Notes under the pieces: generated by a model
Told to the model about the DNA's origin: nothing
What the model saw: the letters and a program-made list of their open reading frames with translations, nothing else
The model's database searches: none
Part shown: in pieces, positions 57,850 to 64,000 of the stretch
How positions within the stretch are numbered: position 1 is the stretch's first letter
How the letters are laid out: the number at the start of each line of letters is the position of its first letter
Position numbers and translations under genes: made by a program
DNA from: Lama glama
Lineage: Eukaryota
Length of the DNA stretch: 64,000 bases
Direction: 5' to 3'
NCBI GenBank assembly: GCA_028534125.1
Contig: CM052837.1
Location: 17,918,001 to 17,982,000 of the forward strand

Positions 57850-58129
57850 CTGAGGGAAGCGGACAGTCGGCCTACTGCTCCCAGACCCACAGGCCAAGGA
57901 CTGGGGCCCCAAAACAGGCCTCGGTGAGGTAAGACAGGCTTCTGGGGACACTGAGGCCCAGCCTCAAAGGCAGACCTCCCCACCCTCTTTAGGCCTCCTG
58001 CCTAAGAACAAGAATTTGGGCTCCAGGATGCTAGAGCTACGGAATGCGGTGAAAGCTGAGGGACTTGACACATGGAGATAATGGACACACATGAACTGGA
58101 CCCACAGGGGCACGGAGCTCCTCACATAC

Positions 58130-58266
58130 CGCGGGCTGTGGGCCTGGGCCTCCAGGGTGTCTGACGCCCCCTCCAGAGAGCTCTGCAGGGCTTGGAGCTG
58201 GCTCACTGTCTCTCGCAGTAGGAAGCGTGTCACAAACTGGTCCACCTTGGAGGCCCGCTCATACTC
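58130..58266 (-). CDS. NECAB3: NECAB3 coding exon (first in window)
   Basis: cAG|GAGTATGAG...CG|GTatgt; [46 protein letters not shown]; 137 nt. Confidence 0.96.
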
Positions 58267-59796
58267 CTGGGGCAGAGGAGGCATGGTCTGCAACTCTCAG
58301 CCCCAAGCATATATTTCTGAGTGGGGAGCTGTCTACCAGAGGGTGCCCCCTGCCCACTAGAGCAACAGTGGCAGCGTAAAGATGGCATGCAGACCTGGCA
58401 TAAGTGGGAGGGCACTGGAACTCAGTGGGCGAGCAGACCTCAGACCCCCTCCTTGTCCAGGCCTGGCCTCTTCCTGGAAGGTATGAGGCCAATTCATAAA
58501 GAACCGTCTGCCATTCTCTGGGCCTCAAGGCCCCTTCACTGTTGGGGCCACCACCTTCAGCCAGTGAGGCCCCAGGCACAGCTGGACTGGGGGTGGGTGG
58601 GAGAGTTGGGGTGTGGTATGACATAATGGACACATGAAGCCGAATGATGGTATTATATGGCTCCATACTCACCAGCTGGCCCCAAATTCACAATCTATGT
58701 ATTCATTCATTTATCCATTCATTCACTCACTCATCCACATAAAAGACATCTACTGAGCACTTCTTACTAAGAGCTGCAAATAAAACACAGTGGGTCATCG
58801 GCCTCACACACTGACCCCAATCTACATCACCATTTCCCCCCAAGCCCTTTCCAAGGTGGGCAGAGGCAGGTAGGCTGACCATGTGCCAGGCCCTGTGCTG
58901 CCCACTTGGGATGCTCCTTCACCTCCTTGCCTGTTTCCTCACCTATAAAACAGGGATGCTAACAGTTATCTCACTGAGCTGTTGAGAGTCTCCAATGAGT
59001 TATTTCCTACATGGGGCTCAGTCCAGTACCTGTCATCGTTTTTACTGTCAAACATAATACAAGAAAACTGCCGACTTGTACATCCAACAGTCAGACTCCC
59101 TGAGAATCTCCTCACCAACTCCTCTCTCTGCCCCCCGACCTACACACATAGCCCAGGATGGGAGTCCTAGGGAGCTGTGGTGCCCCCCTTCACAAGGGGT
59201 CCCAGAGGCACCATCCATCAGGGGCTTCCTCTCCTGCCCATGACCTGCCTCAATTCAGCCATCAGACAGGCAGGGACAAAGGGGAGGCTGGGTCTTCTCA
59301 TTCTTGGACAGGCCAGTGGTTTCTCCAAGCCTCTAGACTTCCTGGCCATTCTCTGAGCTTCCTGAAATCCTTCCAATAAGTTCCTTTTTGGTGTTTAAGA
59401 TTATTGATCAGTTTCTGTTGCTTGCAACCAAAGAACCTGGCTGACACACGCACCCACTCTGTGCCAGGCCCTGTTTCCAAGTAGAATTTCATTTAATCCT
59501 CATAACAGCTTACAGGAACCATAAATGACTCCATTTTTCAGATGAGAAGACTGAGGTCTAGAGGAGTACCTTGGCCAAGGTCCAAAACTAGCTAGTGGCA
59601 GAGCCAGAATTCAAACCAAGGCCACAGAAATTCCTCTCTAGTCACCACTAAGCATTTTACAAGCATAACCTCACTTATTATCATTAGTCCATTTTTACAG
59701 CTGAGAAACCAAGGCCAGAAGTTACAGACAGAGTAAATGGAGCCAAGATTTGCCTGTATGTTCTGGGAGGAGGAGCTCGGAGCCTGGAGCTGGTGA

Positions 59797-60135
<339 letters not shown>

Positions 60136-60757
60136 TAGGGGCATGGAAGGGGTAGGAGAGCCCCTCCTGAGGATGAGGGTCCCAGGAACCCACATGGATG
60201 TTGATGGGGTCCTAAGAGCCCAGAAGGGAGAGCAGGGGATTCCAGGGACCAGGAGGTGGATGAGACTTGGGAGGCCAGGAGGGCATTCTCCCAACCTAGG
60301 ACTGATGGGTGGAGGTCCTGGCATGGGGGATCAGCCCAAGCTGGTGACACTGGAGCTATGGGCACGAGGAGTTCCCTTATGCCCTTTTCCATCCCACAGC
60401 TTCAAAACATGCTACTTTCCCCCCTCTTCAAGTGGGCAGAGGCCCTGGGCTGGGGCAGGGGTGGGTGAGGGTCCCAGCATCAAAGCTGGGGCCAGGGGGG
60501 TAGGCTGGGGATCTCATAAACGGGATCCAAGTGAGGTCTCAGGTCAGCCTGGGGTGGAGGAGGGTTTCCAGAGGGGCAGCAGGGGTCCAGGGCGATGGGG
60601 TAGGATACCTCCCTCCCCCACCTCCCCAGGGCTAGGATGGCAGGAGTCCAGGAGACGCAGAAGGAGTTAGGGCCTAGGAGACAGACCTGGGTGGGTGAGC
60701 GTCCCCGGGAGGAAGGCTGGACGCGCTTTCCCCTCACGCCCCTGCCCCACCCCCTAG

Positions 60758-61153
60758 ACCAAGATCGTGCTGCTCCTCCCCCTGGACAAGCAGCAGCAGC
60801 TAGCTGAGGTGACGGCGGGCCCCGGCGCGCGGTGCGGGCGGCCGGGTGAGGACGCGGCGGACGCCCGGGTGGCCTCCCCGGCGGCGGTGCCCATGCTGCG
60901 AGGAGCGGGCGACGGCGCGGAGCGGCGCGAGGGCGCACGAACGCGCGAGGTGAAGAAGATCCTGGTCCTGCTGCTGCTGCTGGACGCGGGGCTGCAGGAA
61001 GAGGGGCGCCGCGCGGAGGGCGGGGCCAAGGCGGCGCAGGGCTGTCAGCGGCTCTACTCGCGCCTGCTGACCGACAGCGAGGCAGGAGGCGAGGCCGACC
61101 CCGCCGAGGAGCAGCCACGCAAGCGGCGCCGCTGCCCTCGCCCGCGGCCCTGA
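60758..61153 (+). CDS. C20orf144: C20orf144 orthologue exon 2 (total 174 aa)
   Basis: ccctAG|ACCAAGATCGTG; TKIVLLLPLDKQQQLA...AEEQPRKRRRCPRPRP*; in phase with exon 1. Confidence 0.88.
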   Translation, partial: TKIVLLLPLDKQQQLAEVTAGPGARCGRPGEDAADARVASPAAVPMLRGAGDGAERREGARTREVKKILVLLLLLDAGLQEEGRRAEGGAKAAQGCQRLYSRLLTDSEAGGEADPAEEQPRKRRRCPRPRP

Positions 61154-61194: not shown

Positions 61195-63584
61195 GAGCGC
61201 AGAGCAACCACTGCTGGCCCTGTGTGAGGCATCTGGGCGTGAAGCCGGGGTAGGGGAAACTGAGGCCCAGAGCGGGACAGGGAAAGACCAGGCGTCTTGA
61301 GGGCAGAGCAACGGCCATGGCCTGGAGTCGAGGCTGTTTCTGCCTTCTCCTTCCTTGTGACCCAAGAGTCAGTACCCCTGCCCTGGGCTGGGGAGGGGGC
61401 ACCCTGCCACAGTGGAGGGAGGCTGTTCCCTGCCTCCAGGCCCAGGTCAGACCCTGCAGGTCTGCAGGCCCAAGGGAAGTGAGCTTGCGCAAACCCAGAC
61501 TTGGCCACGCGAGGAGGAGAGGTGCATGCTTCCAGCAGAGGCCAGGCAGCTCCAAGAGTTTCCAGCATTCACTGGTCTTTTTGAGGCTGAGGGAGAAGGT
61601 CCCAGGCTTTTGCTTTTTAGCCACCACCTTAGGGAAGAACTGTGAAGGTCCATGATTTGAGCTTTAGAATCACATTCCACCTGTGAGAGCACCCAGGAGG
61701 AGAGGCTGAGGTCCCTGGTTCTCTCACTTCTGCTGCACTCTGCTTGGAAACCCCCAAGGCACCTCAGTTACCTGTCTCCTACCTACCCTGTCCCATCCCT
61801 CTCCCCACATTGCAGCCGCTGATCTAGAGGACATTTCATTCCCCTGCTCATAAGCTCATGCTGGTTCCCAACTGACCACAGGGAAAGGCCCAAGCTTATT
61901 ATTGGGATGTGCAGGCCTAGCCCCACAACCTCAGTCTTCCCCTCTGGGGCTTCTCAGCGACTTCCACCCTCACTCCTGGTCTGGCCATACTGTCACTTGT
62001 GGTCTTCAATTCAGCTTCTATTGAAAATACACTTTTGTCAGTGTCAGCCTCATCAATGTCCTGACCACATTACCTACATCAAGCTTGAGAATCCACTACC
62101 CACATAGCATCTCCTCTGCTGCTTGTGAGAACTGACCCTTTCCTAACAACCACATGGTTACAATCAGGGTAAGCACATTCCTTAGTGTGGGGCACATCTC
62201 CTGGAATAAGTGATTGGCCCTAGCTGGTCCTATCAGTCCCTTCTCTGGGTCCGTAATTCAGGAGCTGTTAAAGGCTGTTTTCTACAGGAATATGCACAGG
62301 CTGAAACCAGCCTTCAGAAGATTATAAACACAATGCAGAGCCAATGGCTTCCCCACAGCCCTGCAGTCAGGCCCTGCTTCCAGTCTGTTCCTAAACCCTG
62401 ATTTCATCCTGCCCTTGGTATCCATAAGACATACAAGATGCTTGTATAAAATCCCTATTTTAGCTTAAGCTCACCTCAGTGGGTCTTCAACTTGCAACCA
62501 GAAATGTCCTAAAGAAAATAAAGAGACTGCGGAGACAACAAGTGGCCGCTTTCCTGTAGGTGAGGATGACCACCTTTTGGAGGAAACAACTGAACCCAGA
62601 GAGGGATCCAGACTTGTTCAGGGTGCACAGTGTGTCAGCTTCAGAACTGAGTCACAAACTCAGGCCCACGTAAGACCATTTGCAGAAGCTGCTGTGAGCT
62701 GCCTGGGTCCCTGAAGGCTAAGCACACAGGTCTTCAGGGTGGCTGTAGATCTGTGATTAAGACCTTTCTCTTCAGCACTGAGAAGGGAGAGCCCACACAT
62801 TTGGCCAGAGCACATCAGGTAATCCGAAATGGTTTGGGGATAGAATCAAACTGGTTGTTCTGAGCAGCTGAGGCCAGACCTCTGGATGTTAAAAATCGCC
62901 ACCCTCGGCCCTGCTCCAGGAGAGAGGATATGTCTGGGGAGTTTTCATCAGAGTGGAGGGCTGAGGAAGCATGGCAGGTGCTGAGGACTGAGGTCACAAT
63001 GAGTCCAATCCAAGTTCTTTTCCTTCTTTCTCTGACCACCCCACCCCAGCCCTACCTCCACAACCAGGAACTACAGTACTTCTGCCAAGCCCAGGTGAGA
63101 AGTGCCAGGAGCCTGCCCGGGGCTCAGGGGCTGGGCTGGGCTCCTGGGTCCCCAAGTGGGGATGTATGTCTGGATGACATTGTCACAAGGCCCCATAATT
63201 CCCAGAGCTGCTTCCGGAGGCTTCTCAATCTCTTAAAGGATTTGGCCCAGACTTATCCTCCATCTGAAGGGGCAGAGACGCACAGCAGAGGCGAGTCCTC
63301 AGAGACATGGTAGGGCCTTGAGTCAGAGGAGGGCAAAGAGGACCAGAAGCGGCCATAGCCCAGCGAGGGCGGGAACTGACACCTGAACCAGAAGCGGGGT
63401 CCTTGGGCCCAGGGAAGGAGTCCAAGAACTGAAAAGAGACATCCACTCGGTCCAAAAAAAGTAGGACCTCAGGACCAGACCGCAGAGACCAACAAACTGA
63501 GAGCAATAGCTATCTAATCCAGAAAGGCAGGGACGTAGGGCCAAGGGGCAGAGCCAAGAGCTGAAAGGCGGGCCTCCATCTAGG

Positions 63585-64000
63585 CCAGCGGAGTTGGGGT
63601 CTCAGGCCACGGGCGCAACTGAGCCTCTGGGAGCAAAACTCTTGGCTGAAGGGCGTGGCCGGCCCGAAGGTGGCGTCGCTGTCCGGGAGCTGTCGGGTCC
63701 GCCGGCCGCCCTCACTGGGTCGCGTCGCCGTAGTAGTGGACCAGGGCTCGGGTTTCACCAAAGCGGGCTTTGCGGGCGAGAAGCAGCCGCGCCTGGTGCT
63801 GAAAAGCTCCAGCCTGGTGCCCAGCCGGGACCCGCCCGTGCTGCCCAAGGCGCCGGGCTGCGAGCTGGCAGGCAGTGTAGCGCGGACGCACCCCATCAAG
63901 CACGGCGTGGTAGTGGACTGGGAGGCCCTGGAGAGGCTGTGGGAGCGCCTGCTGGTGGGCGGCCTGCGGGTGTACCCAGAGCAGTGGCCGGTGCTGGTGA
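63585..64000. other. CpG island over ACTL10 coding region
   Basis: Dense CpG and high GC content. Confidence 0.75.
63715..64000 (+). CDS. ACTL10: ACTL10 actin-like protein, N-terminal part (start codon uncertain; runs off window)
   Basis: LGRVAVVVDQGSGFTKAGFAGEKQPRLV...HPIKHGVVVDWEALERLWERLLVGGLRVYPEQWPVLV, matching actin DNGSGMCKAGFAG and [20 protein letters not shown]...LRVAPEEHPVLL motifs; position inside a NECAB3 intron matches human ACTL10. Confidence 0.85.
   Translation, partial: MGRVAVVVDQGSGFTKAGFAGEKQPRLVLKSSSLVPSRDPPVLPKAPGCELAGSVARTHPIKHGVVVDWEALERLWERLLVGGLRVYPEQWPVLV

Follow-up and report, generated by a model that had tools for sequence, protein, structure and literature searches.

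The ACTL10 locus at the end of a 64,000-nt stretch of the Lama glama genome (the window) raises the question of how the amino-terminal lobe (N lobe) of an actin-like protein is made from an exon that holds no AUG. The window end at position 64000 cuts the ACTL10 region. On the plus strand, the actin frame opens after a TGA at 63562-63564 and continues for 145 stop-free codons up to 64000, while the final plus-strand ATG of the window lies at 63307, with no ATG in any plus-strand frame from 63310 to 64000. In-frame near-cognate codons occur at 63655 (GTG, ggcGTGg), 63670 (GTG, aagGTGg) and 63715 (CTG, tcaCTGg), and the aspartate of the phosphate-1 (P1) loop at 63739 becomes residue 9 when the CTG is counted as residue 1. 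An earlier note on this DNA had reported the ATG-free region, the open frame, the three codons with their contexts and the residue number of the aspartate, all of which we confirmed. From the missing AUG, the coding evolution of the lobe and the homology of its candidate start codons, which are read directly from the sequences below, we infer that the ACTL10 N lobe is probably translated from a near-cognate codon, most likely the GUG at 63670 with some use of the CUG at 63715, on a messenger whose leader would be unspliced.

Judged by its matches, 63565-64000 holds the 5' part of an ACTL10 orthologue from a eutherian mammal other than human. Positions 6-99 of the Pfam Actin profile (PF00022) align with frame residues 55-145 at E 4.5e-15, and in a phmmer search of 1.8 billion representative proteins the best matches were ACTL10 models (71-76% identity, E down to 1e-43), with conventional actins ranking after them at ~40% identity. 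The window holds ~95 residues of the actin fold, which comprises about 370 amino acids (aa) when complete; one of the encoded N-lobe peptides is VAVVVDQGSGFTK. The P1 loop is intact (DQGSGFTK), and its columns are almost invariant in both of our alignments (A1 and A2).

Two sets of relatives were compared with the window. The sole mammalian DNA relative was L001, a 1992-nt metagenome contig, and all codon-level results refer to the window against L001. It was the single usable mammalian contig in the scan of metagenome contigs, where the other 73 loci were distant actins; the scan of genome contigs returned microbial actin-like matches only. L001 is 99.75% identical to the protein P0218 and 87% identical to the humpback whale model, and we take its source to be a cetartiodactyl, probably a ruminant, and not human. 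The protein alignments comprised 48 eutherian rows including the window (47 others) and 6 non-eutherian rows. The features on which the argument depends are as follows.

63310..63669, plus strand: leader without an ATG in any frame, 5' of GTG 63670.
63562..63564, plus strand: in-frame TGA limiting any upstream extension inside the exon; the homologous TGA is out of frame in L001.
63655..63657, plus strand: further near-cognate codon, GTG, in good context (ggcGTGg); absent in L001.
63670..63672, plus strand: GTG, the best-supported start (aagGTGg; ATG in L001, Met in rabbit, mostly Val).
63670..64000, plus strand: proposed coding sequence, a 15-codon N-terminal extension followed by the actin N lobe (PF00022; indel-free against L001; codon substitution rates).
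63715..63717, plus strand: CTG, secondary start candidate where tetrapods ancestrally had their start Met (Leu in 41 of 48 eutherian rows; poor T at -3).
63739..63753, plus strand: phosphate-1 loop DQGSG, aligned to the DNGSG of solved actins via the relative P0289.

Across the 95 codons from 63715 to 63999, the window and L001 differ at 36 nucleotides, distributed 9/4/23 over the three codon positions, and the ratio of nonsynonymous to synonymous substitution rates (dN/dS) is 0.08-0.13 at a dS of 0.42-0.66. For the 15 codons at 63670-63714 the ratio is 0.28-0.50. No indels separate the two sequences across 63652-64000, while indels of 1 nt and 2 nt occur upstream of ~63652, where conservation of the frame is lost. 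Among the 47 other eutherian rows, mean pairwise identity is 85.8% for the N lobe and 81.1% for the C-terminal part, and it falls to 49% for codons -15 to -1 and to 24% for codons -30 to -16, counted from CTG 63715; gene models that contain the lobe are a selected sample, in which the absence of frameshifts is biased. Because of the low dN/dS against L001 and the high eutherian identity, we take the N lobe to be coding. These comparisons place it under strong purifying selection despite its AUG-less exon, which argues that it is still translated. They also indicate that the N lobe is at least as constrained as the commonly annotated 245-aa part of the protein, with constraint fading upstream of codon -15.

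The origin of the AUG-less state can be read from the non-eutherian rows. The start Met of turtle, alligator, emu, axolotl and two marsupials (all six rows, in both A1 and A2) aligns exactly with CTG 63715, their consensus start MG[KRS]-[VIT]A-V-ID-NGS corresponding to LGRVAVVVDQGS in the window. None of the 48 eutherian rows has Met in this column (Leu 41, Pro 2, Val 2, Gln 1, Arg 1, Gly 1), and L001 also reads CTG. Since Met is missing from every eutherian row, the lack of an AUG is, on this alignment, a eutherian-wide state, and the AUG was lost before the sampled eutherian orders diverged. A sequencing error or a loss of the ATG specific to this species, which the earlier note had named as a possible explanation, is ruled out by the AUG-less state being common to the relatives. 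The proposal that CTG 63715 is the leading start codon fared less well. Its position is exactly that of the ancestral Met, but the column holds Pro in rabbit, Gly in dog, Arg in slow loris and Gln in Phyllostomus (a bat), all of which keep a conserved N lobe; for this reason CTG 63715 cannot, as far as the alignment goes, be a general eutherian start, and GTG 63670 is the better candidate.

GTG 63670 lies 15 codons upstream of CTG 63715 and has A at -3 and G at +4. The homologous L001 codon reads ATG, again within aagNTGg, and no other ATG precedes it on the contig; the rabbit protein P0308 has an internal Met in this column. The column count, made at the protein level from internal residues and from NCBI or UniRef starts only, with codons read in the window and L001, gives Val 26, Met 4, Leu 2, Ala 5 and Thr 1 as internal eutherian residues. 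Val is found in whale, horse, three bats, mole, colugo, tree shrew and slow loris, as well as in guinea pig, chinchilla, naked mole-rat, ground squirrel, jerboa, ferret and cat, and Leu in shrews. The preceding residue is Lys in 24 rows and the following residue Ala in 28 rows, which implies broad conservation of both Kozak bases, A at -3 and G at +4. A residue compatible with an NTG codon is missing from both the -15 and the 0 columns in the dog model only. The first M of Logan/ENA proteins was discarded as proof of an ATG, since the first M of P0218 corresponds to a GTG in L001. GTG 63655 was likewise rejected as a conserved start, as it sits at the 2-nt indel and is absent in L001.

Between these codons the plus strand encodes a basic RVRR motif (63694-63705, codons -7 to -4) just before the old N-terminus, with the eutherian consensus SRRVRRPPS. 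Its residues resemble a proprotein-convertase site; a short targeting peptide of basic residues, or GC-rich sequence and nothing more, would account for them equally well.

In dinucleotide-preserving shuffles of 63310-64000 the mean was 3.4 ATGs, and only 1.1% of the shuffles were ATG-free. The absence is unremarkable for 63670-64000 alone (ATG-free in 41% of shuffles), whereas the upstream part, 63310-63669 on the plus strand, has no ATG against 2.0 expected and was ATG-free in 7% of shuffles. L001 is likewise ATG-free over the 328 nt preceding its start codon. The distance from the TGA to the start codon is 108 nt in the window and 107 nt in L001, which places the TGA of L001 out of frame. 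The start region is CpG-rich, with 37 CpG per 400 nt and a G+C content of ~70% (window 63600-64000). A second plus-strand frame (frame 0) is stop-free over 63508-64000 and a minus-strand open reading frame (ORF) spans 63510-63899; such additional frames are expected at 70% G+C and are no evidence of overlapping genes. One further element of this region was recorded from the comparison with L001.

63558..63580, plus strand: 23-nt block, GAGCTGAAAGGCGGGCCTCCATC, identical in L001.

This block is probably a promoter or leader element. A GGGACGT motif at 63530-63536 (plus strand), which looks like a cyclic AMP response element (CRE) half-site, is also kept in L001, and both could possibly be core promoter elements of a post-meiotic gene. 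An Rfam scan of 62500-64000 gave nothing near threshold.

Taken in order, the events that we propose would begin with the original start AUG, still used in marsupials, sauropsids and amphibians, becoming a CUG in the eutherian stem (63715 here), while the N-terminal half of the actin fold would have stayed constrained and hence translated. Scanning ribosomes would traverse a leader without AUG in any frame and initiate most likely at GUG 63670, adding ~15 basic residues before the old N-terminus, and some initiation would probably also take place at CUG 63715. Ribosomes missing both codons would continue to the internal Met from which annotation pipelines derive the 245-aa fragment, which is without the P1 loop and subdomain 2. 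In the RNA runs of three studies, 0.41-0.45 of the sampled 63000-64000 words are present, a share that, as indirect evidence, fits unspliced RNA reaching back to ~63535-63570 and, roughly, also a spliced form. It is quite possible, and we advance it tentatively, that most eutherians have depended obligatorily on non-AUG initiation of ACTL10 ever since their stem lineage lost the AUG, with GUG -15 and the CUG as two partly redundant codons; the gene would then be a dated natural case of a start-codon loss that was survived.

Several observations weigh against initiation at these codons. The -15 column holds Ala in dog, meerkat and hedgehog and Thr in a pocket mouse. No unusual hairpin was detected 3' of GTG 63670 when RNA folding was compared with shuffles (z-score 0.9), and the conserved AAG preceding this codon would also fit a splice acceptor. 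Moreover, the window carries five private changes in columns with 90% or greater conservation (W38R, G45K, G54S, A58T and G74R), a count that is joint third-highest among the 48 rows, and some relaxation of constraint is possible. The count is no outlier, as other rows reach 6-7, and W38R, G45K and G54S sit in a gapped or loosely aligned part of the comparison with actin, a region that we take to be the equivalent of the DNase I-binding loop (D-loop).

Three other explanations have to be set against initiation at GUG 63670. The main start could instead be CUG 63715, the mutated ancestral start, giving a product with the ancestral N-terminus; this is unlikely. Its exact match to the non-eutherian start Met in 6 of 6 rows, the prevalence of Leu in the eutherian rows, the CTG in L001 and the G at +4 all speak for this codon, but the lobe is still conserved in rabbit, dog, slow loris and Phyllostomus, whose residues in this column do not fit a near-cognate codon, the base at -3 is a T, and codons -15 to -1, at 49% identity and indel-free against L001, appear from this to be translated themselves. 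The second is a spliced alternative, in which an AUG is supplied by an upstream exon:

62930..63094, plus strand: candidate first exon of the spliced model (ATG 62930, ATG 62999; donor CAG|GTGAGA), similar to N-terminal extensions of NCBI models; no Pfam family.

Here, ATG 62999 or ATG 62930, both contained in the upstream ORF 62930-63313 (plus strand), would be joined from the donor 63094|63095 in phase 0 to an acceptor at 63651|63652 or 63669|63670; in a variant of this explanation the upstream exon would be a C20orf144 read-through exon. The segment resembles the N-terminal extensions of the slow loris (Nycticebus) model P0301 (49% over 49 aa, E 2e-9) and the naked mole-rat (Heterocephalus) model P0002 (57% over 49 aa, E 7e-7), and ATG 62999 lies inside a block, LRTEVTMSPIQVLF, that agrees with the slow loris model at 14 of 16 residues. 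The donor has the consensus sequence, either of the nearby AGs (63650-51 and 63668-69) would keep the frame, Bclt-ACTL10 fusions exist among NCBI models, and an RNA word share of ~0.40 would also suit a spliced upstream exon. Yet both candidate acceptors are weak, with an A at -3 and scarcely any pyrimidine tract, and the slow loris and naked mole-rat models themselves read through the 63094|63095 donor and use other junctions. In a word search of 5.8 billion clusters, the upstream-exon peptide was found, among proteins of 255-810 aa, in the slow loris model only. Many NCBI models either have 245 aa (including Pongo, Microcebus, Dasypus, Tenrec and Lycaon) or start at unrelated upstream ATGs, the first ATG of L001 falls in the main exon, and the primary extension of human ACTL10 forms one genomic block. 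We therefore consider a spliced upstream AUG quite unlikely. The remaining explanation, that the N lobe is a recently silenced relic, untranslated in the llama lineage, with only a 245-aa AUG product or none, appears very unlikely. It would accord with the reported dispensability of ACTL10 for mouse fertility (PMC13752377), with degenerate ACTL10 elsewhere (Nannospalax P0005 and the truncated P0003 cluster), with the five private changes and with the fact that an open frame of such length is not rare at 70% G+C. However, when all 10 amino-acid differences from L001 are assigned to the window branch with half of dS, the ratio is still ~0.2; the private changes are within the range of other rows, with three of the five in the gapped or loosely matched actin region; and the N lobe is conserved across eutherians, all of which are without the ancestral AUG. 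Initiation at GUG 63670, with some at CUG 63715, is thus the explanation that we prefer.

The upstream ORF 62930-63313 contains a hydrophobic, signal-peptide-like stretch in addition to the conserved ATG 62999, and the region could be an exon, an upstream open reading frame preceding the main one, or a promoter element. As a speculative variant, the RRVRR motif and the hydrophobic upstream peptide MSPIQVLFLLSL might mark a secretory, convertase-processed acrosomal form of the protein.

The neighbouring genes would fit an ACTL10 locus. A Bclt gene is encoded on the same strand ~2.5 kb upstream of ACTL10:

59917-60138 and 60767-61153, plus strand: Bclt (C20orf144-like) gene, two exons (Pfam PF15318, E 4.7e-23 and E 6.9e-56).

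In some NCBI models (Tupaia, Sorex fumeus, Phyllostomus and Peromyscus isoforms) Bclt exons are fused to ACTL10. A minus-strand ORF at 57964-58293 resembles a NECAB3 exon, as judged by eye only. Both would agree with what we take to be the usual ACTL10 neighbourhood, namely C20orf144/Bclt upstream on the same strand, with the locus lying inside NECAB3, which is on the opposite strand.

The earlier note had further proposed that the product is a full-length, nucleotide-binding actin-related protein. The evolutionary comparisons support a full-length protein from a near-cognate start, whereas nucleotide binding by ACTL10 is uncertain because the phosphate-2 (P2) loop of relatives departs from that of actin: the P2 loop of the llama protein lies beyond 64000, and that of P0289 reads EAGAG instead of the DSGDG of actin, in the context VEAGAGV in P0289 and its relatives as compared with LDSGDGV. 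The P2 loop of these relatives suggests that ATP binding or hydrolysis by ACTL10 may differ from that of actin. Two further entries, P0005 from Nannospalax galili and the cluster P0003, represent ACTL10 copies in a degenerate or truncated state; they carry numerous changes in conserved columns and end prematurely, which suggests that particular lineages have lost ACTL10.

A non-AUG extension of ACTL10 is already catalogued for human. In Supplementary Data 1A of Fedorova et al. 2022 (Nat Commun 13:7910, PMC9789052), human ACTL10 (ENST00000330271.4) is listed in PhyloSET, which collects 60 genes whose sequence evolves as protein-coding already before the annotated AUG. For ACTL10 it lists a theoretical AUG-less extension of 167 codons with a PhyloCSF score of 1553.95 and 112 alignment records, together with a GTG start predicted from ribosome profiling (Ribo-seq; rank 1732) and a proteomics count of 1. 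In the sections of that paper available to us, the gene is a single table row, undiscussed and outside the 30 re-annotated genes, and neither the ATG-to-CTG history nor the ATG at -15 in other lineages appears there. A literature search found no paper linking ACTL10 with non-AUG terms in its main text, and ACTL10 is absent from the supplements of PMC11317171. The present analysis adds the ATG-to-CTG history, the NTG codon at -15 (ATG in L001, Met in rabbit) and the stepwise upstream fall of constraint.

The gene product has been found in male germ cells and sperm, localised to the acrosome (PNAS 2026, PMC13752377); it is outside the testis actin-related protein (Arp) complex of the subacrosomal layer, and knockout mice are fertile. 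The human ACTL10 promoter has been reported as a maternally methylated germline differentially methylated region with paternal expression (PMC9255983). In most mammals, the ACTL10 of public annotation is either a 245-aa fragment or a protein with an unrelated N-terminus, and such annotation can lead astray those who design antibodies or knockouts or interpret variants, for example in work on the acrosome and fertility such as PMC13752377. If initiation at GUG or CUG is true, ACTL10 would be one of very few genes that make their complete fold solely from a non-AUG start, and its case would have a clear evolutionary origin, since marsupials still have the AUG that eutherians have lost.

The closest comparison is with human ACTL10 itself as tabulated in PMC9789052, which is the same gene and likewise has its annotated AUG inside the actin fold and a long AUG-less in-frame extension. 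The GTG predicted there lies 155 codons before the AUG, whereas the -15 codon of the window is placed by alignment ~138 codons before it, so the two are probably different codons. With the testis-enriched ACTL7A, ACTL7B, ACTL9 and ACTRT1-3, ACTL10 shares the actin fold (PF00022); it differs from them in standing outside the Arp complex and in the degenerate phosphate-2 loop of its relatives. Like the known genes that use only non-AUG starts, ACTL10 would start its complete-fold product at a near-cognate codon in a good Kozak context across mammals. Unlike them, it would owe this state to the loss of an AUG in the eutherian stem, with neither of its two codons strictly conserved and with an AUG at -15 in L001 and rabbit.

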